Assembly: GCF_964204645.1 (NCBI RefSeq) | Contig: NC_134033.1 | Location: 13,028,655 to 13,092,654, forward strand | DNA from: Tubulanus polymorphus | Lineage: Eukaryota; Animalia; Nemertea | Direction of reading: 5' to 3' | Length of the DNA: 64,000 nucleotides | Notes under the pieces: model-generated | What the model was told of the DNA's origin: nothing | Databases searched by the model: none | The model's input: only the letters and a program-made list of their open reading frames with translations | Position numbers and translations under genes: made by a program | Part shown: piece by piece, positions 870-22,848 of the stretch | Position numbering within the stretch: the stretch's first letter is position 1 | How the letters are laid out: the number at the start of each line of letters is the position of its first letter

Positions 870-1106
870 TTGTGATTGGATGGTTGATAGCACAGTGACA
901 GATACTAGGTATATCGTTCATTGGTCAAGTAACGTATGACGTCAGCAAACCTACTAATAAATAAAGAAAGTGTCACTTTGACGAAGCTTGGAGTAATCAT
1001 TTTTTTTGTCAAATGATTACTCCAAGGACGAAGGGTGTTAAAGAGGATAGGTCGTTTTCCAGTGATAATTATCTTTAATTGAAGCGTCACTTTCGATCAC
1101 GTAAGT
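870..1106 (+). promoter_or_regulatory. Putative promoter and non-coding first exon of the MurL-like gene
   Basis: Inverted CCAAT boxes (ATTGG at 875 and 920), a perfect CRE palindrome TGACGTCA (937-944), and a consensus donor AC|GTAAGT at 1100/1101 that could pair with the acceptor at 2487. Confidence 0.4.
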
Positions 1107-1325
1107 AGATATGTACATCAAATTCCAAATATCCAAATATTGACGCTTGATCGGGAAGTGTTAAACTGTATAACAACTCCATGATTCAATTGAGCAATAT
1201 TGTTATCAGCTGTAGAATATTTACGTGTTTTTTCAACGTAGAAATGAACGCACTGATACGTACGCGTTACAATTTCTAATGATGATATAAGTATAATATA
1301 TATATATCTCGGGTAGAGTTCAAAG

Positions 1326-1545
1326 TAGCAAAAACAGAATAAATCTCATTTTCTAATCAGTAAATAATGTTACATTTCCCCTCTTCAGGCAAAGGGCAAG
1401 TGATTAAATTTTGATAGTGTAGTTAAGGTATCAAAATTTAATCACTTGCGCTATGCCTGAAGAGGGGAAAATGAAACTCCCGAAAACGTTCGCTACGATG
1501 AATAAAAATCATTCACTGGAATTAGATTTCTGTTTGTTTTTGCTA
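1326..1545. mobile_element. Fold-back remnant of a probable Penelope-like element terminus with a hammerhead-like core
   Basis: 42-bp inverted arms at 1375-1416 and 1429-1470 with 2 mismatches, plus outer inverted matches at 1326-1336 and 1535-1545. The right arm runs into CTGAAGA-stem-GAAA-ACGTTC followed by AATAAA. Confidence 0.5.
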
Positions 1546-2496
1546 GTACAGATTTATGATATAATATACTGTATATTTGCATTCATACATGTTTATTCTT
1601 GCTGTTAATTTCGATATATTTGATTCTTCAACAACCGGATACAATTGTAAGGAACTGCGTCAGACCTGTTCGGGTTGTACACATAATTTAGATGTTCCGT
1701 AACTTCTTTTTGTCGACGAGTAGTTTCAGCAGTTTAAGATATCAGGTCAATAGTTCATCGTTTTAAGCATAGGCTCATTTTAGAGTCCATGTATTAATAG
1801 ATATGCATTATATCAAAGATTGGTAAACAGTATCGTTGACGGTGCTATTTTAGCCAGTTCGTTATCGAAACCGCAAGTGACTTCGCACGGGGCAAGAAGC
1901 TCATTGTTCAACGACCTATCGATTTAGACAATAAAACACATAAATGGTGCAGGTCAAATTTCATCCATTAATCAATATTATTAAGAACAGATCTGTTAAA
2001 ATATAGACTTTCGTCGACTTGAGAAATGGTTTCCGGCCATTCTACTGTGGCAATCGAGGATTCCAATTGCGGCAAGTTAGGATCCGCTAGGACCGCTGGT
2101 AATATTATGCGTAGTAGGAGTTCAAACCATAACTGGAACGGCAATTGAATAAATGATTTTAAGTGTTGACATAGACAGGTTTAGTGTTCTACCTTGCCGT
2201 AACAGTTTTATCGTTTCTTGGTGTCCGTTTGTATACCTCTTGTTAAGGTGACGAGTGTAAATAGATTTAAAATTTAGATTTCATTTTATTGGACAATACG
2301 CGGTCAAACTCTAAATTTCCAGTATATCGTTAAAGTATCGTCGATAAAACTATAGTTATTTGACCGGGTAGAAAATCTATCATTCTTGAATGTAAAGGGA
2401 AAGCTGCAGAGGGATAGATTGATGTTTTTCTCCCAAATATATCTTAAATTCTCTAAACTTATTGGCGCGTTGATTTATATTTTACAGATATTGAAA

Positions 2497-3903
2497 ATGA
2501 CTACCATTACGCTGAAGTCTTACACCCGTTCCAAGCATCAGATCAGCACTGTTTACGGTGTTGATGATCTGCAATTCACGACTTCGATGTGGTACCACGA
2601 TGTCAATTTCTACGACCTCGAGAACATCTACGGCAAAGACTACATGGATCGGGTTTATTTCCACATAGTCGTATTCGATATGAATAAATTACAAAGCGTT
2701 AAACCCAAGCACATCGACCTGGGTCCTTACGAACGCTACCATACGGTCGAGTTTGAAAATCTTTGGCTGAAACATTTCTCCGGCGCATTTTCCCAGTGGT
2801 TGTACGAAAACGACCTGCACGATTACAAAGGCCCGACGTTTCTTCACAAGGCGAACGATAAAAAATTCAACGCCGTTGAAACCACGGCCCCAGACGGCCC
2901 CGAGGTGCTATCTCTGAACGGTGGAGGTAAAGATAGTCTGCTAAGTATGTCGATTTTCGATAAGGTCGGGGTCGAGTATGGTACCTTGGTTTTCAGCAGT
3001 AGTGTTTACGGTACTTCACGATTGCAGCTCCGTCTGACGGGCGATTTGGTCAAGAATTGCAGTAAGTCGCACAGACATCACCAATTAGCTATGTACGACG
3101 ATTTTCTCGACAGCCCCATTACTGATTTACGAGATGACGTCGACATTAAAACCTTGCAGGAGGATGAAACGATTAAGTCGGTATTTTCGGTGCTGCCTTT
3201 CGTTTTGCAGTATCGATATCGATACGTGAATCTGGGTCACGAGAAGAGCGCCGAATACCCGAATTTAATCTGGGATAAAAACGGCTTGCCCGTCAATCAC
3301 CAATACTGTAAAAGCATCGCCGCGCAGATCCTGGAAGATACGTACATAAAAAATAATCTGGTGTCGAATTGTACGTTCTTTAGCGTCTTGAAGCCTTTGA
3401 ACGACGTAATGATCTTCAGTATGTTGAATTCGGTAGATCCCAAATACATACCCTACACGCATTCTTGCAATAAGATCAAACCCTGGTGCAAAAGGTGCGC
3501 AAAATGCGCCTATATTTGGCTGGCGTTCATGGCCTACCAACCGACCAACTTGATCGACTCGATTTTCAACGAAAACCTTTTCGACGTCGACGAAATTCAG
3601 ATATTCTACCGGCAGCTGTTGGGTCTGGAGAAACACAACGCGTTCGAATGCGTTGGTCAAATCGACGAAACGCGTCTGGCGTTTGAGTTGTGCCGACGTA
3701 AAGGATTGAAGGGAAAAGCTATGGATATTTATATCGATGAGGTCAGCGGTCGATACGATCAGGATTCGGCGATCATGAAACTGACCGAAGTCGATACGGA
3801 CTACGATCGCATTCCATCCAAATTCGCCGAAGATATCATGGCTCTGTTCAGCGAGCAGGAAAAAGTAGCTCGTGACTTCTTGAAAGGAAAGCTTATAAAA
3901 TAA
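2497..3903 (+). CDS. MurL-like PP-loop ATP-dependent enzyme (UDP-MurNAc-L-Ala-L-Glu epimerase family), 468 aa, single coding exon
   Basis: Motifs in MurL order: LSLNGGGKDS (PP-loop), GHEKSAEY, VNHQYCKS, HSCN..KPWCKRCAKCAYIWL, LLGL..HNAFECVG..ETRLA. The ATG at 2497 follows a splice acceptor (tttacag, 2481-2487). AATAAA at 4008-4013. The ORF-track start at 2386 is a TTG inside the putative intron. Confidence 0.8.
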   Translation: MTTITLKSYTRSKHQISTVYGVDDLQFTTSMWYHDVNFYDLENIYGKDYMDRVYFHIVVFDMNKLQSVKPKHIDLGPYERYHTVEFENLWLKHFSGAFSQWLYENDLHDYKGPTFLHKANDKKFNAVETTAPDGPEVLSLNGGGKDSLLSMSIFDKVGVEYGTLVFSSSVYGTSRLQLRLTGDLVKNCSKSHRHHQLAMYDDFLDSPITDLRDDVDIKTLQEDETIKSVFSVLPFVLQYRYRYVNLGHEKSAEYPNLIWDKNGLPVNHQYCKSIAAQILEDTYIKNNLVSNCTFFSVLKPLNDVMIFSMLNSVDPKYIPYTHSCNKIKPWCKRCAKCAYIWLAFMAYQPTNLIDSIFNENLFDVDEIQIFYRQLLGLEKHNAFECVGQIDETRLAFELCRRKGLKGKAMDIYIDEVSGRYDQDSAIMKLTEVDTDYDRIPSKFAEDIMALFSEQEKVARDFLKGKLIK

Positions 3904-4756
3904 TCGTTTTTGGACTCCCTGAGTTTCATCATTACAATCATTAGAGTTGATAATCATGATATTTGATGTAATTGATACCGAATCGCAACATCGAGTGTTT
4001 TGTCAGAAATAAAGGCAACAGGGATTGTAAACATTGAAAATACATAACCTAATTATTACTTTATTTCTGCTCTTTTTATTTTCTCTTTTTTCTTATTCTA
4101 TTCTCAAGATGAAGTAGAAGTCAATACAATTACAGGAAAGTAGAGGAAAAAAGAAATGCACCGACATAGTATTATACGACTACCACGACAGGGGCACGGC
4201 AGGGATTACCCCACATAGATTATTGTGTTGTTTTGACTTTAAACATCTCGAAACAAGGCAGAGTAATAATATTGTCTTCGTGACTGGCTGATTGATTATA
4301 CCGTTGACCATCGCAAAGTTGAACTTTAAGCACCTCCCAGGACACTGTCCTCTAAGACTGGCCAATAATACCAGTCTACAAGCCCACACAACGCAACTGA
4401 TTCGTCCAATTTTTGATGTAATTACCCAGCCGGTATATCCTTAACCGAGTGATGGATAACAGATATCAGAAGATGATCAGAGATCATTGAATCTGTAGCC
4501 AATCCCATTACTTGAGACCGCCAGATTTTGTACACCGAGTTTTAAAATGCAGGAGTGTTAAAAGCCAAAGGAGCTTGCATTGTTTGGGCTGCGGCTCCTG
4601 AAAGCTCCGACAAGTTACGACTAGTATTTACGTAGTTTCCATGAATCAGTATGAACTCGTGAAATACGAAATACATAACCAATTTATTTTCATTCATTGA
4701 AATCTTTTTATTTCCTCTTTTTTTCTCTCGATTTTCAATCTCAATATCATTTTCAA

Positions 4757-7486: not shown

Positions 7487-8640
7487 ATGATAAACTACTA
7501 GTGAATATATCCAAAACGCATGACATTGTAATCCAGCAAAAGAAGCATATCCGACTGATAAAGACACGCTTGATTCGTAGGTCCATCTGTGCAGAGGTCG
7601 ACAGCGACGCAATAATGAATAAAGTTTTCTCATCGTCCTTCCTTTTGATGAACAAATTCTTCCAAATTTGATTTTTATGGATTTTTCGCGAATTCCACAG
7701 TTTGTTTGAATGTGAATAAAAAAACTTATTGCTGCTCAGATTCCCAATCAGTCTGATTCTTGGTGAAGGTATTGCGAAAATGCTTCCATGGGTCCTCATT
7801 TTACTGGAAAGTAGTTCTTTCTCAGTCAAAAAGTCCTTCCTTTTGGGTCTAAAATTGCTGTAAAAGTCCTTCTAAGTACTTCTTTTTACCCTGGCCTTAC
7901 CACTGGAAACCCTGCTTATGGCAGTTGAATTAAAGATACAATTATATCCAGCCTGTGTCCAGTTTGTGGCTGAAGATATGAAACTCATTAGATCCTATGC
8001 AGCCCATGTCCAGCTAGAGAATGAATGACACTGTGTATGACATGAACTGATAGCTTTCATTTACATAATAAACGTGTAGCCTAATGCACACCTCAATGAT
8101 TCTGAACAGCACTCGTTGAGTAGGTAACGATAATTCTGACACTTTATCAATGACCAAAATGACTACCTTACAATATCAACTCATTTGGAGGCCTATTAAA
8201 AAGTACTTTAGAATAATTATATTATAGAAATCAAGAAATTAATCATAAAATAGAAATGACCTTCAAAATTAGTTTCTGGGATGTTCATCGTAACCTGTAC
8301 CTTCTGTTCGTCATTTTGATTTAAATCCTTACTGAATACTTGATCTAATACATTCAACCCCTTAAATACCAACCAAATCAGTGATTTATGATTTTGGCGG
8401 TTTATTGGGACTGGCTTTGACGAGATTCAAATGTTCCATTAATGTCAGAAAAAAACTGGTATTTGATGATGGGTATTGTCATCTTTGACGCGATTATCAT
8501 ACTAAAAAAAATAATCAAGAAAATATTTTTTCATGATTTTCTGTATCACTGTTTGACATTTCATTTTTCTTCTGCCGACCTAAACAAGTATCCTGCTGTT
8601 CAGCCCTGCTAATGTTATTATCATTCTTTAAAATTTTTAG

Positions 8641-8758
8641 CTGGAGTGATCTCATTATTGGATGAAGAAGAGCCCGAATTGAAAGTATTCGCTCTCGAGA
8701 AACTGAATAACATCGTCGATGTATTCTGGGCTGAGATCTCCGAGGCCGTGACGAAAAT
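8641..8758 (+). CDS. PSMD1: PSMD1 exon 2
   Basis: [40 protein letters not shown]; AG/GT bounded with consistent phases. Confidence 0.95.
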
Positions 8759-8924
8759 GTAAGTAGTAAAACAGCGACCGGTACTTTAATCATGGAATAC
8801 CCTCTATAACGATATCAAACTGGTTGGCTTTACTTCAAGAAAATCACTGCGTCCCGTCGCTTATGACATCTATCTACATAAATCCCTCGGTGACATCATC
8901 GAATTGATGCTAATTTCACCTAGT

Positions 8925-9178
8925 AGGGTGGCCACTGACCTGTCCTAGAGGTCTCAGGGAATCAGTAAATTACGGGGAATTTGACAGTTTGTGAAAAACC
9001 TGGAAAACTCAAGGAATTTTGATATGTTATTGACCACATGCATTTCTATCAATACATGATTCATTAAGATGATTGAGTTGTAACATTTTAAACCAAGAAA
9101 TTGGATTTACTGAGAGAATTTTGTGTTAAAGTGTGGAAAACTCAGGAAATAAGTAAATTGGTGGAAATTAGCCACTGC
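8925..9178. mobile_element. Degenerate non-autonomous DNA transposon (CAGGGTGGCCACT-type terminus)
   Basis: AGGGTGGCCACT start with internal ggaaaactcagggaa-like repeats. Complementary or similar termini occur at 20455-20467 and about 32638-32649. Confidence 0.4.
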
Positions 9179-9301
9179 CTTATAACCTTTCAGAAAATCC
9201 ATAAAAATCTCTTCTATAAATCCCCATGAATCCTTGTACAGTGTCACAAATATAAGCCCCTGTTTACATTAATATATTTTCATTAATTGATATTTTTTCA
9301 G

Positions 9302-9471
9302 CGAGGTGCTTTATGAAGAGGCTACGTTCAAACATCGTAATTTAGCGGCTCTGGTCGCGTCGCGAGTTTACTATCACCTCGGCGCGTTCGAGGAATCGTT
9401 GACATACGCGCTCGGCGCCGGAGATCTGTTCAACGTCAACAGTTCGTCGGAGTATGTGGAAACAATCATCG
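9302..9471 (+). CDS. PSMD1: PSMD1 exon 3
   Basis: [56 protein letters not shown]. Confidence 0.95.
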
Positions 9472-10115
9472 GTACGTTGTAACAATCAGTTTTTCCGGTT
9501 CCAGAAACATGACAGACCCCTAGGACCCCTCGACTGTTTAAAGACTCATTCAAACAGAAAATGCTTGATACTGATTAATCGAGCAAACTGCCTAAACTCA
9601 TTTAAAACTTATATTTTGAGAAATAGGCAATTAGAATTTTTTGCTAGTTCCAAGTTGTAGAGTAGACTACGACTAAATTGGTACAATTGGCAGCATACTT
9701 TTTTTTACCAAATTGAAATTAGACGGCTAGCCAATTACCAAATAAGAAGTGAGTTTAGGCACAGTATACAGTCAGATAAAAATGTGCTTATGAAACCTCT
9801 AAATTAACGGCTTGATGAGATAAACAGTATCGATTTAGGGGGTCCAGCTTCACGAAAAAGTTTATCTCAAAGTTTTTTGATTTAATTACTATTGGTAGGC
9901 CTAACTGTACATTGCCAATGAGGCCAACACTTTAGCCTTACCAGTTTTAGCTTACACTTTTTCATGAAACTGGGCCCAGCAGCCATGTTCAAAGGGTTAG
10001 TTTAATTTAGTTTATTTTCTACATTAGAGCCCTCGTGTAAAGTTGTCGAACTGGCCCAAGTTTCCTAGATGTTTCTTTTTTCATCATTCGAATACATTTT
10101 CTTAAAAATTTTCAG

Positions 10116-10321
10116 CTAAATGCATCGATCACTACACGAAATTGTGCATTTATAACATCGACCTGTCGGAGGAGGATCAGAAACCGATCGACCCACGTCT
10201 CGAGGCGATCGTCAATCGCATGTTCCAACGATGTTTCGACGATCACAAGTACAAACAAGCGGTCGGAATCGCTCTGGAAACCAGGCGCGTCGATATATTC
10301 GAAAAAGCCATCTTAGAAGCG
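10116..10321 (+). CDS. PSMD1: PSMD1 exon 4
   Basis: AKCIDHYTK...[36 protein letters not shown]. Confidence 0.95.
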
Positions 10322-10803
10322 GTGAGTAAATGTTTCGGTAGTTGATTTGAAAACGAATCTATCCTCCAGGTTGTAGGAATAGTTTTCTCTAAAAAATTGA
10401 CTTTTCATAAAATCAAAGTTGAACGTTGAAAATACAGACTTTTAGAGAAATCATCTTACTTCATTCGGGTTTTGCAGTGGAGCTTATTCGAGGGGGTGCC
10501 ATTTATTTACCTGGAAATCAGGGAATTTTATTTTCTCTCCTTTAAAAGAATAGTCAGGGAATTCTCTAAAAAAAAGAAGCTTTAAGCCATGTTGATATTG
10601 CTGTATTACAAACAGTCCCTATCTATGTATCTATCTAAATATATATAATAATTGGACATTTTATCGGCTCACTTGAAGAAACTGATGATCAAAGTATGAT
10701 TTGCACTACATTGACGATTGCCTGAAGGTGTGTGGTTCAGGGCTGTAGATTTTATTACAAGGAGATGAGTGGAAATGACCGTTTTAGATATCACTATTTT
10801 CAG

Positions 10804-10947
10804 GATGATGTAAACGCGATGTTGTCGTACAGCGTGAAAGTGTGCATGTCGCTCATCCAAAACCGCCAATTTCGCAATCAAGTCCTACGCATTCTCGTCA
10901 AACTGTACATGGGACTGTCGACCCCAGACTACATCAACGTTTGTCAG
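10804..10947 (+). CDS. PSMD1: PSMD1 exon 5
   Basis: [48 protein letters not shown]. Confidence 0.95.
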
Positions 10948-11150
10948 GTAGGCTTTACAATAATAGCTATTATTCTATTTGAGTATGAAACAATACTTAA
11001 AGTATCTTAACTCTACATGATTAGAAGTGGCTGAAGTCAACTCAATTTGGCCTTAAAGTCAGGGGTCAGTTGCACAGTCACTGCATTTGATATTTTATGA
11101 GACTAGGCTTGAAAAATCAGAAACTTTTATTTGATAATTCATTTTTTCAG

Positions 11151-11516
11151 TGTTTGATATTCTTGGACGACCCGCAAGCGGTCGCCGACATTTTGGAAAA
11201 ACTCGTTAAATCGGACGCGAACGACTCGATGATGGCGTATCAGATCGGTTTCGACTTGTACGAGAGCGCCACGCAACAGTTCCTACAACGCGTGCAGGGG
11301 GCGCTGCGAGCGACGGCCCCGATTCCGATACCGGAAACGATGTCGACGTCGAAGCAGACGGACAGTAGTTCAACGCCGGCGAGCGTCGCCGCGACGACGA
11401 CCTCGAGCGCCGACGGTAAAGAGACGCCGATGGATACGTCGACGACAGATGAAACGAAAACAGACGAGAAAGAAAAAGAAAAAGATGCAATATCAGAAAA
11501 ACAGCTGGAAGATTTA
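11151..11516 (+). CDS. PSMD1: PSMD1 exon 6
   Basis: [18 protein letters not shown]...[18 protein letters not shown] followed by an S/T/E/K-rich loop. Confidence 0.93.
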
Positions 11517-17877: not shown

Positions 17878-20309
17878 TTAAACTTCTTTGATATTGAGGG
17901 TATAAGTGACGGTGTTACGTCGCGTGTCGCTGATCCAGTTCGACGGCGTCAGGAACATCGACTCGGGCTGCTGCGAACTGCGGCGTTCACCGCGCGCGCG
18001 CCGACGCAGCCGATATTTACACGTGATTATCTTATAGAACGCGTTGCGAAACGACGTGTTGAACATCGTGTAGATAATCGGGTTCGCCAACGACGCCAGA
18101 TACCCGAACCACAAGAAGGCACTCATCATTTCGGGCGTGACGCGTGCCATGCACGCCGCGCACGACACCGACAACACGTTCACGACGAAAAACGGCGTCC
18201 ACAACACGACGAACACGACGAAAATAATGCCGAGAACTTTCGACGCTTTTTTCTCATTGTTCGCCGTCCGTTTCGGAATCAAACCGCGAACGTTGATTCG
18301 GTTTTGCTGTTGTTGTTTTTTGTCTTTGAAATGCGGCGGTGTTTGGCGATAGGACGAGTCGGACTGGCGCGACCAGCGCTTTTGGTGTTGGCGTTCGACG
18401 CTGGCTGTTTTGAGCACGCGTTCGCGCCACTCGTCGGCGGAACGATCGACCGGCGCGTGGTGCACGCCGTTGACGAGTATATCGCCGGTTGTTCGCGCGT
18501 CTGTCGACTCGTTGTTGCACGGCGAGGTCACGTGACCGTTTGGCGCTGTCACGTAGCTGTCGCTGTCGGTGCTCGTGTGATTTTCACCTCGTATCAACCG
18601 ATCGTTTTCGCGTGCCGGACGCTTCATGTAATTCACCCGGTAAACATAAATTCCGTTCGTCTCCAGCGATAAAGTTACGATTTCGGAATTTTCGGTCGTC
18701 GCCTCGAGTCGTATTTCCGGTTCGGATTGGCGACCGTCCTCGCGACCGTCCTCGTAGCGACGCTCGTCGTTATCGCTAACTTCATCATCGTCTTCCTCCT
18801 CTTCGTCGCTTTCCTCGCTTAGATTTTGATCGGAGTCTTCTTCGTCTTCGTCCGACGAAGAGCAGCTCTCCGTCGCGGCGAAACGACGTCGATCGTCTCT
18901 CATCGGATCGGAGATCGTAGTCGTACGCGTTACAAACGCGTCGCCGTAACTTTTCCGACGGTTGACGTCGACGTTGTCGGCCGCGGTCGTCGTCGTCTGC
19001 CAACAACGACCTTGACCGCGATGAATCGTCAGCGGACCGTTATCGATCGTTTTTAAGCGCGGTAGACTCTTGCGATCGTGCGGCACAATTTTATAGAATT
19101 GATGGCGATAATCGATGGAGGCGTCCGTGTCGGATTTACCGAGATTGTTTCCTTCTCTTCGTCCGTCGAAACTTTGGAATGTAACGTTTTCGGACATTGA
19201 TCGTTTATCGTTCGGTTGATCGTGACTATCCTCCGTCCCGACGGCGACAGTGCCCGATTTCGAGTCCGGCTCCGGTATTTCCAGATACTCTTCCATTTCG
19301 AGTTCGATCTGGCTGAGTTTTTCTTGCACTTCGGCCGGCGCTTCGAGTATGTCTTTGCCGTGAATGCTGACGAGACTCTCGACGCTGGCGCACAGATTAC
19401 GACTCGACGCGCCCGGTAGAGACAGATACGACATGAGCACATTGTGTTTATTGGCGGCGCCCGTTTCCGGGCAGCTCGTGATGCTGTTCAGACGATCGTG
19501 AAGATTTGTCGGCGGTACGGGTGGCGCCGTCGACGACGAGGCATCGCTGATTTCGGGTTTTAACACGAGCGGTTGACGCGGGTCACCGTCGCTCGATTGC
19601 GCGTAACTAACCGAACTGGAATTCTCTCGCGCCGCTGGCGTATGCGGTATCGGCGGCAATTTGGCGCCGACGTCGCGGCTCATCAACGCCGCTAAATCTT
19701 TCGGATCGACGATCGAGCTATCGCGACTCTGCGTCACGTAAACGCTGTTGTCGTTGCTGATTTCGTTGTCGTAGCTGGAATAGCCGTTCGGCGCGGATAA
19801 AAACTTCTGGTTGTTGTACTGCGGCTGCTGCAGCTGATGCTGCTGGTGGTGATGATTCTGCGCGTTCATCAGGTTGATATTTCGTCGCAGCATCGTCTGT
19901 CGGTTTTTGTCGACGCGTCGCATGAACTTGCTGTTGTTGCGCAGGATGCGTATCGTCAGCACGTACGTGATGATCATGATCGTCAGCGGCACGTAGAACG
20001 CGAGCACCGACGCGTAGATGACGAAGTCGACCAACGTGATCATGCACATGCCGTCGACGTAGACGTTGTCGTGGTCGATGAACCCGAGCACGCAGACCGG
20101 CGAGCAGATCGCGATCGACACGATCCACACGAACGTGATCTTCAACAGCACCATCGTTTTCGTCTTGTTGCGGCCGTATTTCATCGGGTATTTCAACGTG
20201 AAGAATCGATCCATCGACATCGTGCACATGTGCCAGATCGACGCCGTGCACAGACCGACGTCGAACGTCGCCCATAACGCGCACAAGTGCGGCCCCATCG
20301 GAAACAACC
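17878..20309 (-). CDS. HTR2: 5-HT2-type serotonin receptor, coding exon 2 (TM3-TM7, C-tail); 911 aa in total
   Basis: Acceptor tttcag| at 20310/20309 is in phase. TM3 WATFDVGLCTASIWHMCTMSMDRF (aminergic Asp), TM5 FVIYASVLAFYVPLTIM, NEKKASKVLGIIF..WTPFFVVN, and WFGY..NPIIYTMFN..FRNAF are 5-HT2 signatures. Confidence 0.9.
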
Positions 20310-22848
20310 CTGAAACATGCAAACGTAACAATTAGTTTATGGATGATGATAATAAAAGATTAAATGAATTGTAACAATTTAAGACTTTCTCTGATTCACG
20401 CAGGGAGTTTTATGTAGTCACATGGAGAACTAGGGGATGTGTAAATGTATGGAAAGTGGCCACCCTGAGTTGGTCTGAAACTGTTCCTAAGTCTTAAATT
20501 GTCCCTTAAAGTTGATTCTACAGACATGGCATAGATTAAAGACCATCTTAGTTCCGAATCCAATCTAACAACTAAAGACCAGTCTTAAAAATTGGGACCT
20601 TACGACTATGCAACTGGCCCTCCCAGCGTTCTAAAGATTCGCAGTTAAATTTGACTAGGGCAAATTTTTTAACCTCAAGTCTGGAATTGGGTTTGTATAA
20701 AGATAAGATCAGCACAGAGCTTTTCTTCAATTGATCCATGATTTTAAAATCTTTCTCTTTATTTTTAAGGAGCTTTGAGATTTTTATATAGATGTTAATC
20801 GCTTTTAAGGAATTTGTTATGATTATTTTCCACTCGCGGTATTTCCTTCAGTTCATCGAAATATCATCAAACTACCGACATAATCCCTATCGAACCTTGC
20901 CTCCCACGACCTAGAAAAAAAAACCAATCAATTCCGAGTGGAAATGTCGTCTCGTACCGGAACGAAACGTTGCTTGATTTTAATTTTCGTTTCGACGTTC
21001 GCCGTGTGACTTATCTTTACGACGGCGGCGGCGGTTTTTACACGCGCCGCGCGCGATCAATAAGGCTTAGTTCGATCGCTGAAACAACTAACGCAAACAT
21101 CGCCGCCGCGTCAAACGACGAAGAGAGAGAAGATTATAGATCGGCCCAGCAGCAGCAGTAGCAGACTGTCTACGCTTAGAAAACATCCGTGACGTTCGCA
21201 TTAGCTTCGCGTAACCTGTTGCCGTGGAAAAAATGTAGAAAGAACCTTCCGGAAGAGATGGCTACCACAAAAAGTCCTCGTGTGACATCATTATTTTGCC
21301 CAGTTTGGATTGAGAACTTCGGAGACAGTAAAAAGATCTCTACAGAAAGTCTGCTGCCATCCCCCAGGGACAGCTAACGATTACCAGTGATTTTAGGAAC
21401 CTTGCTGAACCAGCCATCGTAAATCCACCTATGACATCATGTTGGATTGTGTAGTGATTTCAAAAGCCTCCAGGGGCGAGTTCCTCAGTCGTGAGTTAGA
21501 GTTGACTCTGAGTTAAAATTAGTTCATTTCCAATCAGTTAACTCTTCCATAACTGTGGAACTGGGTTTTGGAACCTACCATCATGAATCCTAATACGGTA
21601 TCATATAGAATTAGTTAGTTATTTTGCAGAAATTCTGCTGCCTCCATTATTCCTCTTAGTGACATTGTCGAATTTTCCGGTGACCATACAGAAAGAAGCT
21701 GCCAACATTAAACCTCTTTGACATCATCAATTTACCCAGTTTTGTCAATAACATTCTCCTGATAAGGATTTATTCCTCGGCGAATACTCACGATCCATGA
21801 TCCTCGTAATGTTGACTACTAAAAGATGGCTACCTACGAGAGTCACCCTATGACATCATCGAATTTTGAGGTGATTTCGATACGAAGGCGTTTCTGGAAC
21901 GATCGCGCTTCCTTTCTCGGTGATCGTCGTTGTTATACCCGCGGGGCGTTCAAATAGCCGATTTACGACCTTTCAAATATTGAACGATCAATCGAATGTC
22001 GTTCGGATCGCGCCACGATCACTCGCCGGTTTGTAACTGAATTGTAATTGATCTCGGGTAAACAGCGCCTGCGGGTCAGGTGTGTGTTTACCCCCGCTCG
22101 GTGTAAAACACAGTCGATAAATCGATGTTACCCGCTGACACCTCACTGTCTGTTGTGTTTCCCAGGTTTAGCCGAGCGATAGATATAATTAGGTGTGATG
22201 TCGTATCATCGTCAACCGGATGTGGCTACCTACGTCTCAAAAAGTTTTTAGAGTTCGTGAATATGATTTCTAAGTTCCATGATTCGATAGTTATGTTATC
22301 TAGTTGTATGAGTTTGATTTAATTCAGGAACCAGTTCCACAGTTGTGTTGGTTTAAGTTGGACCCAGTTCTGTAGTTATGTGGGTTAAATCTGACTTCGG
22401 GCTGAGATCCCGTTGTGAGTTCGTCTCCATGCAATAAGCTACGCGTTGAAGGAAAGGTTCGGCAGTTTAGACAGACATAAAGGTTGGACACCTGATTGTC
22501 ACCCGTTCAACCCCTGAAGGGATAGACATTGATAATAAGACCCAAAGGGGATAGACCCTGATAGAGAACCCGAGAGCACAACAGACAGCGTCGTTTTAGT
22601 AGAGACAAATAACAATGGAAATCACCGAAGGCAACCGTCGCATTTGTCCAATTTCCTGCGGTCGACACGAACTGTAACGATACGACACGATGATCAATAC
22701 TGATTGAATTACTCGGCGCTGTCGTCCGTTACTGACCGCTCAAATCACTGACCATCACTGACCACTGCTAGACTGACCATTAATTATTATCAATTGAGCC
22801 AACTGACTATTGTAAAAAAGAACGACCTCTAAACAGCTAGCAATTTAT

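Follow-up and report, generated by a model that had tools for sequence, protein, structure and literature searches.

A bacterial MurL-like PP-loop enzyme gene, very probably acquired by horizontal transfer, in the nemertean Tubulanus polymorphus

We analysed a 64,000-nucleotide stretch of the genome of the palaeonemertean ribbon worm Tubulanus polymorphus (hereafter the window; assembly GCF_964204645.1, contig NC_134033.1, forward-strand positions 13,028,655 to 13,092,654), in which a first-pass annotation had noticed a gene for a homologue of the bacterial cell-wall epimerase MurL, which uses ATP and Mg to convert the terminal Glu of a peptidoglycan precursor from the L to the D form. This gene was very probably acquired from bacteria by horizontal transfer and domesticated in the T. 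polymorphus lineage. As an overall explanation, we consider it probable that a bacterial MurL-like gene was captured, the ancestral substrate of which was an ergothioneine-type compound.

Results

Gene structure and transcript

An open reading frame (ORF) at 2386–3903(+) contained an ATG at 2497, from which a protein of 468 amino acids could be read without an internal stop; the coding sequence (CDS) was intact and intronless, as had been proposed. The motifs named by the first-pass annotation were all found in the window protein: GGGKDS at residues 142–147, HEKSA at 248–252, VNHQYCKS at 266–273, SCN..WCKRCAKC at 323–337 and FECVG at 383–387.

A 1604-nt contig of sequencing run X5 joined positions 1033–1100 directly to 2488–4023, skipping 1387 nt with GT..AG ends. 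The predicted splice junction from 1100 to 2488 was thus present at its exact coordinates. The donor (cac/GTAAGT at 1100/1101), the acceptor (ttttacag/AT at 2487/2488) and the AATAAA signal near the end of the contig had likewise been read correctly (Table 1). Run X5 is dated 2014, comes from another sample and study than the window assembly and is not recorded as RNA; we counted the contig as a transcript because of its spliced form. It differed from the window at 15 single bases, indicating that it came from another individual, and no near-identical second copy, which might have given rise to the spliced form as a retrocopy, was found in the genome. DNA run X1 was contiguous over the locus, including across the intron. 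Runs X2 and X3, the kind of which is not on record, extended over the CDS and into parts of the intron but did not show the joint; they were uninformative on splicing. Run X6, which we guessed to be RNA, contained almost none of the sequence words of the locus.

The intron in the 5' untranslated region (5'UTR) carries a dispersed repeat of the host, with 42-nt inverted arms that are 95% complementary and a 12-nt loop. The arms gave at least 90 matches on many T. polymorphus chromosomes, often as pieces of 35–45 nt at 90–98% identity, and the depth of DNA run X1 showed a spike of 980 at this repeat. It looks like the terminal inverted repeats (TIRs) of a DNA transposon or of a miniature inverted-repeat transposable element (MITE) family.

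Five intact copies on three chromosomes

The T. polymorphus genome contained five intact copies of the gene: the window copy on C9, a single copy on C10 and, on C1, a tandem array of three at intervals of ~3 kb. None of the five had an internal stop. Three database proteins, two of them labelled Tubulanus polymorphus and the third a cluster member (P0123), were identical at every residue to copies in this genome. The C1 array is flanked by an SK potassium channel gene and basic helix-loop-helix genes, the C10 copy is set among rhodopsin-type G-protein-coupled receptor genes, and no long bacterial-type ORF was found beside any of the five copies. The GC content at third codon positions (GC3) of the copies was 0.47–0.63, compared with a host range of 0.43–0.70 and with 0.25–0.43 in the bacterial relatives. 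Located 3 kb upstream of the C10 paralog is an open frame of 537 aa (L116:5232-6842(-), which is G000:C10:13029231-13030841) that matched no Pfam family.

An intronless CDS with only bacterial relatives could come from a bacterial contaminant or an assembly artefact, and an animal-labelled homologue on a 3.1-kb contig (described below) may be such a case. For the worm gene we regard this possibility as next to negligible: the contig from an independent individual shows a spliceosomal intron and ends at a poly(A) site, five copies lie between animal genes on chromosome-scale contigs (16.5 Mb for the window copy), the intron holds a host repeat, GC3 is host-like, and the closest bacterium is only ~50% identical.

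Each copy has a pyrimidine-rich AG acceptor 4–15 nt ahead of its ATG, which is suggestive, though no proof, of a 5'UTR intron older than the duplications. Synonymous divergence (dS) was saturated among the C9, C1 and C10 copies, with a nonsynonymous divergence (dN) of 0.20–0.40; for the tandem C1 copies, dN/dS was 0.18–0.23 by NG86 or 0.29–0.39 by YN00. The amino-acid conservation of the five copies is consistent with purifying selection. The copies might instead be functionless and drifting to decay, with the transcript being noise, and the absence of co-transferred pathway partners in exon-by-exon searches of the genome would fit such drift. We hold it to be highly improbable, as all five copies are intact despite synonymous sites that are saturated from locus to locus, dN/dS values are clearly lower than 1, and the catalytic-core residues are all kept in every copy.

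Bacterial origin

The best non-nemertean matches were bacterial, at 45–50% identity; Thiotrichaceae of the large sulfur-bacterium type (Parabeggiatoa, Thiomargarita) ranked top, and members occurred in many phyla. An exhaustive search of 1.84 billion representatives gave 1760 family members, none of them closer than 43%. A maximum likelihood tree of 147 proteins was built by quick search under LG+G4, with SH-aLRT support values; in it, all five copies from the worm grouped as one clade with a support of 100, nested in bacteria. Moving outward from the worm clade, the tree placed a pair of metagenome proteins, then Cyanobacteria, then Thiotrichaceae; the metagenome pair sits in a compact bacterial operon. 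Because the five copies form one clade nested in bacteria, a single old transfer followed by duplication would be the simplest reading.

The only other animal-labelled match, a homologue from Adineta ricciae, was placed elsewhere in the tree. We rejected it as the same event on the basis of this separate position and of its 67% identity to a protein from a Sericytochromatia metagenome-assembled genome. It is either an independent transfer or a contaminant, and its contig (L010; CAJNOR010011262.1), at only 3128 bp, is too short to tell. For T. polymorphus, the spliced 5'UTR intron, the poly(A) signal, the animal flanks and the bacterial-nested tree bore out the proposal of a horizontally acquired, integrated and expressed enzyme.

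Fold and catalytic core

Precomputed labels gave the window protein the architecture PF26299 (MurL_N) plus PF26298 (MurL_epimerase_C); both families were seen only as such labels, since the local Pfam copy gave no match for the protein. A PDB sequence search with the window protein found nothing. The AlphaFold (AF2) model had a predicted local distance difference test (pLDDT) score of 95.4, and its residues 131–351 matched Cap9 (Z 13.2) and QueC (Z 13.1) with a root-mean-square deviation of 2.5–3.9 over 176–188 residues. Further fold matches, at Z 8–9, were argininosuccinate synthetase, ThiI, TtuA, TilS and LarE. Foldseek also matched QueC (E 2e-5), and structural neighbours in the Atlas were found at TM-scores of 0.82–0.84. 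The two labels and the QueC-like fold upheld the assignment of the protein to the MurL superfamily and to the PP-loop enzymes.

The GGGKDS motif was invariant in 52 sequences and follows strand 137–141 in the model, as is usual for an SGGxDS-type PP-loop, which comes after the first strand of a Rossmann-like fold. C324, C331, C334 and C337 were invariant, and this four-cysteine cluster is a candidate metal site, which would probably bind zinc. QueC is known to adenylate a carboxylate. Thirty-seven positions conserved in the MurL clade as well as in the MurL-like clade were retained by the worm copies, among them the PP-loop, E249-x-S-A, N267-H-Q, K272, S323-C-N, C331, C334, C337, F383-x-C385-x-G and E391. 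MurL requires ATP and Mg2+ and releases AMP (PMC5808125). As the MurL core is kept, and given what MurL releases and QueC adenylates, the chemistry common to MurL and the MurL-like proteins is most likely an ATP-dependent carboxylate adenylation.

The worm protein is distinct from MurL

The curated MurL equivalog model gave the window protein 91.5 bits, far below its cut-off of 700 bits, and covered residues 231–449 only, the C-terminal half. Among 301 Gammaproteobacteria, MurL-family scores fell into two groups, 350–821 bits for true MurL and 93–100 bits for MurL-like proteins. True MurL formed a separate long-branch clade (1.35+1.35 substitutions per site, support 100), to which the worm protein is ~25% identical. 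About 50 positions were conserved in the MurL-like clade alone, for example W32, Y33, W90, W101, K328 and P329, and the residues E224, H248 and H322 of this clade are His, Asn and Ser, respectively, in MurL. Such a pattern is what would be expected from a different substrate.

One gammaproteobacterial genome, G211, holds both types, a MurL-type gene scoring 524 bits and a MurL-like gene scoring 99.8 bits (C38:37467-38792 and C36:42362-43258); its MurL-like protein is identical to that of locus L014.

The Mur ligase that accompanies MurL provided a further comparison. In the positive control, it adjoined true MurL in three of four genomes, and it was fused to true MurL in two distant matches (P0254 and P0262). 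Among 893 ORFs flanking 80 MurL-like genes, not one match to MurD2, the ligase that adds L-Glu, was found. An exon-by-exon search of the worm genome gave no match to a Mur ligase, which is a weak negative, as such a search could overlook a gene split into many pieces.

The two-domain architecture is like that of MurL, all 37 core positions are kept, and RefSeq names at least three of the paralogs (XP_074662059, XP_074650393 and XP_074658963) 'UDP-N-acetyl-alpha-D-muramoyl-L-alanyl-L-glutamate epimerase-like'; these are the points in favour of a true MurL in the worm. We find this very unlikely in view of the low score limited to the C-terminal half, the separate clade, the clade-specific positions and the lack of Mur ligase matches both beside the 80 relatives and in the exon-by-exon search of the worm genome. 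In addition, the occurrence of both types in one bacterium argues for different jobs. With good confidence, we conclude that the worm gene is not a MurL orthologue and belongs to a distinct, MurL-like sister clade. The comparison with the MurL and QueC families that the first-pass annotation had proposed as a check yielded a QueC-like PP-loop fold and a score far below the MurL cut-off, and the description of the gene as a 'MurL-type' epimerase had to be given up.

Ergothioneine-type genes beside the bacterial relatives

For 80 bacterial MurL-like members, we clustered the neighbouring ORFs up to 8 kb away and gave names to the clusters. The most frequent named neighbour, at 23/80 loci, was a synthase of the EgtB/OvoA/SenA family. 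As it scored below all three equivalog cut-offs (OvoA 176, SenA 168, EgtB 155 bits), it is a distinct branch. The histidine N-alpha-methyltransferase EgtD, at 20/80 loci, scored 367 bits, above its equivalog cut-off of 291. An ATP-binding cassette (ABC) ATPase of the betaine/proline/choline type (ProV-type subfamily) was present at 19/80 loci, and a fused permease/OpuAC protein (Pfam BPD_transp_1 plus OpuAC) at 15/80. Less frequent were a B12-binding radical S-adenosylmethionine (SAM) protein (Pfam Radical_SAM and B12-binding; 8/80), a heavy-metal P-type ATPase (NCBIfam ATPase-IB subfamily; 7/80) and a class-V aminotransferase (Pfam Aminotran_5; 6/80).

EgtD and/or the synthase lay within 8 kb of the MurL-like gene in 26 of the 80 loci and were immediately adjacent to it in 11 of those 26. 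In the five named phyla, these loci numbered 11/19 in Pseudomonadota, 6/9 in Bacteroidota, 5/7 in Acidobacteriota, 1/5 in Chloroflexota and 1/17 in Myxococcota. The carriers of the operon in this set were all metagenome-assembled genomes. By chance, genes would be expected to lie together within 16 kb of a 4-Mb genome in well under 1% of loci. In the closest metagenomic match (L007), the MurL-like gene lies between a gene fusing molybdopterin and aminotransferase-V parts and EgtD. On this evidence, we think it fairly likely that the bacterial MurL-like clade is tied to ergothioneine-type metabolism. Our literature searches for a PP-loop or MurL-like enzyme tied to ergothioneine, and for gene transfer into nemerteans, found nothing relevant.

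Three neighbours are described here in their own right. The fusion gene of L007 (L007:6307-9693) encodes a 1128-aa molybdopterin-oxidoreductase plus class-V aminotransferase ahead of the MurL-like gene, with EgtD after it; presumably it resembles the metallopterin-dependent ergothioneine synthase. The B12-binding radical SAM protein (~500 aa; first clustered as 'unk519') directly adjoins the MurL-like gene, mostly in Thiotrichaceae, beside EgtD and the synthase (L011:9474-10991, L016:9412-10914, L076:4723-6234 and five other bacterial loci), and it may mark a modified thiohistidine product. A third protein, c20 (~460 aa), is encoded directly downstream of the MurL-like gene (L088:9379-10767, L083:9389-10783 and L077:9391-10734) and is fused to the MurL-like C-terminus in P0156 (residues 465–968) and P0179 (residues 392–834). 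It matched no Pfam or NCBIfam family, is unrelated to the radical SAM neighbour and is a likely functional partner of the MurL-like enzyme. A homologue of c20 was not found in the worm genome by exon-by-exon search, a weak negative.

Other features of the window

The features of the window are listed in Table 1. The CCAAT and cAMP response element (CRE) motifs to which the first-pass annotation had pointed do occur upstream of the transcribed region; their role in a promoter is that of candidates. The annotation had also placed an ordinary intron-rich animal gene 2.3 kb away. Coding exons of the animal gene PSMD1 were found downstream on the same strand, and they began 4.7 kb from the stop codon; a non-coding first PSMD1 exon could lie nearer to the CDS. 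The PSMD1 exons encoding RPN2_C are located 84 kb past the window end. An 817-aa open frame with a high GC content (0.55) lies on the minus strand at 17878–20331, apparently inside a giant PSMD1 intron.

Table 1. Features of the MurL-like locus and its surroundings, in window coordinates.
Feature	Position	Strand	Basis and remarks
ATTGG (inverted CCAAT), candidate promoter motifs	875–879 and 920–924	+	read from sequence only
Palindromic CRE TGACGTCA, candidate promoter motif	937–944	+	~90 nt 5' of the first transcribed base seen; read from sequence only
Non-coding 5' exon	1033–1100	+	record 25 of run X5, joined to 2488; at least this long, as the transcript may start farther upstream
Spliceosomal intron in the 5'UTR, 1387 nt, GTAAGT...TTTTACAG	1101–2487	+	X5 joint 1100 to 2488, GT..AG ends
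Host dispersed repeat within the intron, MITE- or TIR-like	1375–1470	.	inverted-repeat search
Exon 2, the last exon: 9 nt of 5'UTR, full CDS and 3'UTR	2488–4023	+	X5 contig
CDS of the MurL-like PP-loop enzyme	2497–3903	+	468 aa, stop included, wholly within one exon
AATAAA poly(A) signal	4008–4013	+	sequence; the transcript contig stops at 4023, 10 nt downstream
Neighbouring animal gene PSMD1, RPN2_N domain, at least five exons	8640–11315	+	matches at C9:13037294-13039969

Discussion

We propose that the captured bacterial gene would have acquired a poly(A) signal at one end and, at the other, a promoter region, a first exon without coding sequence and an intron 9 nt ahead of the ATG, and that duplication would then have given the five intact copies on three chromosomes. 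In the predicted protein, MurL_N is the N-terminal domain; after it comes the QueC-like PP-loop ATP-pyrophosphatase domain, which contains the cluster of four cysteines. Such an enzyme would adenylate a carboxylate of its substrate with ATP, freeing pyrophosphate and later AMP, as in MurL and QueC, and the substrate, once adenylated, could be epimerised at its alpha-carbon or else transferred to a nucleophile. The substrate would not be a peptidoglycan precursor. Judged by the presence of EgtD, an EgtB/OvoA/SenA-family synthase and a betaine-type ABC importer in the bacterial clusters, the ancestral substrate would most likely belong to the ergothioneine pathway, as a histidine-betaine or thiohistidine compound or as a pathway intermediate. 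Because the worm took this one gene only, the compound used by its enzyme would come from the diet or from a symbiont, or would be a related endogenous one. The first-pass suggestion of a new role fits these results; muropeptide processing and the synthesis of D-amino-acid peptides, which it had named as examples, gained no support, the bacterial context pointing to ergothioneine-type metabolism.

Several points weigh against this explanation. The proposed substrate and the proposed outcome of the reaction come from gene context and homology only, and the spliced contig of X5, the run not recorded as RNA, is the sole expression evidence. In the bacteria, 50 of the 80 loci had no ergothioneine-type neighbour, and among these were both cyanobacterial loci as well as the pair of metagenome proteins nearest the worm clade, the latter having an aminotransferase and a cytidine diphosphate (CDP)-alcohol phosphatidyltransferase as neighbours. 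EgtD occurred anywhere in the genome in 6/7 genomes with a MurL-like gene, in 111/301 of the background (37%) and in 0/3 with true MurL only; this co-occurrence is modest (roughly p = 0.01), has a base rate taken from a single class and is suggestive only. In the worm genome, exon-by-exon searches, again weak negatives, found neither EgtD (Methyltransf_33) nor a DinB_2 domain, and an EgtB-like synthase query gave one weak match only (E 1.5e-4, 27.7 bits). Finally, the worm has substitutions at sites with a bacterial conservation of at least 95%: R102L, E264L, P226L/I and W270Y/H in all five copies, and G271C in four of the five. P382A, at another such site, was also found in four of the five copies.

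Three of the worm-specific substitutions border the NHQ..K motif, and for this reason the substrate may have changed after the transfer. The compound used by the worm enzymes may be of the ergothioneine type and imported; alternatively, the enzymes may have taken a new substrate after capture. That they still act on an ergothioneine-type compound is a tentative idea, which we lean against. To our knowledge, animals are thought only to import ergothioneine-like compounds. We give somewhat less credence still to a bolder possibility, namely that the uncharacterised clade is a missing ATP-dependent step of thiohistidine-betaine metabolism and that the worm would epimerise, amidate or conjugate ergothioneine-like compounds; the substitutions common to all five copies would then mark a worm-specific substrate.

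A domesticated enzyme with a substrate unrelated to ergothioneine, such as an N-acyl amino acid or the C-terminus of a peptide, could place D-residues in a secreted peptide or toxin. It would be in line with the lack of ergothioneine-type neighbours at most of the bacterial loci (50 of 80), those nearest the worm clade included, with the altered sites near NHQ..K and with the chemistry of MurL, which works on a peptide C-terminus. We judge it unlikely, as no positive evidence points to any such substrate and the set of EgtD, synthase and betaine transporter is the only recurrent context across several phyla. Capture of a MurL-like gene with an ergothioneine-type ancestral substrate remains our preferred explanation.

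Several known systems can be compared with the worm gene. MurL has the same two domains, MurL_N and MurL_epimerase_C, as well as GGGKDS, ExSA, NHQ..K, SCN, the cysteine cluster and the cysteine of FxCxG. It differs in its low identity and score relationship to the worm protein and in the ~50 positions conserved by the MurL-like clade; moreover, that clade was never found paired or fused with MurD2, and the worm makes no peptidoglycan. QueC and the QueC-like anti-phage proteins Cap9/QatC were the best structural matches; they are PP-loop enzymes with carboxylate adenylation as their chemistry and with a Cys-rich metal site. Unlike them, the worm protein is only 13–15% identical, adds a 130-aa N-terminal domain and a helical C-terminal domain, and has no deazaguanine context. 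The bacterial ergothioneine sets (EgtD, EgtB and EgtE; the EgtUV importer) resemble the present system in that members of the clade lie inside or beside such sets in 26–30 of the 80 loci, whereas the worm carries the MurL-like gene alone. We know of no PP-loop enzyme in the described ergothioneine pathways.

Other bacterial genes captured by animals include a D-Ala-D-Ala ligase in bdelloid rotifers and the amidase dae2 in ticks. Like the worm gene, these are bacterial enzyme genes that gained introns or UTRs and are expressed and selected in an animal. They belong to other families, whereas the worm gene has expanded to five copies and comes from a donor clade without a known function.

Only a few transfers of a bacterial enzyme into an animal are well supported. 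In T. polymorphus, four findings answer the usual objections: the transcript of another individual is spliced, each of three loci has animal genes to its left and right, the intron contains a host repeat, and the five copies are intact, with saturated synonymous divergence. The gene is a well-documented new case of a known type of event, and it brings with it a new functional lead for an uncharacterised clade. The RefSeq label 'MurL epimerase-like' suggests cell-wall chemistry; as the clade is a distinct paralogue, the automatic name is corrected here. The functional lead, an ATP-dependent step connected with compounds of the ergothioneine type, covers a family of more than 100 clusters at 50% identity without an assigned function. 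If it is true, a new enzyme would be added to an ergothioneine-type pathway, and an animal would be seen using part of that pathway.

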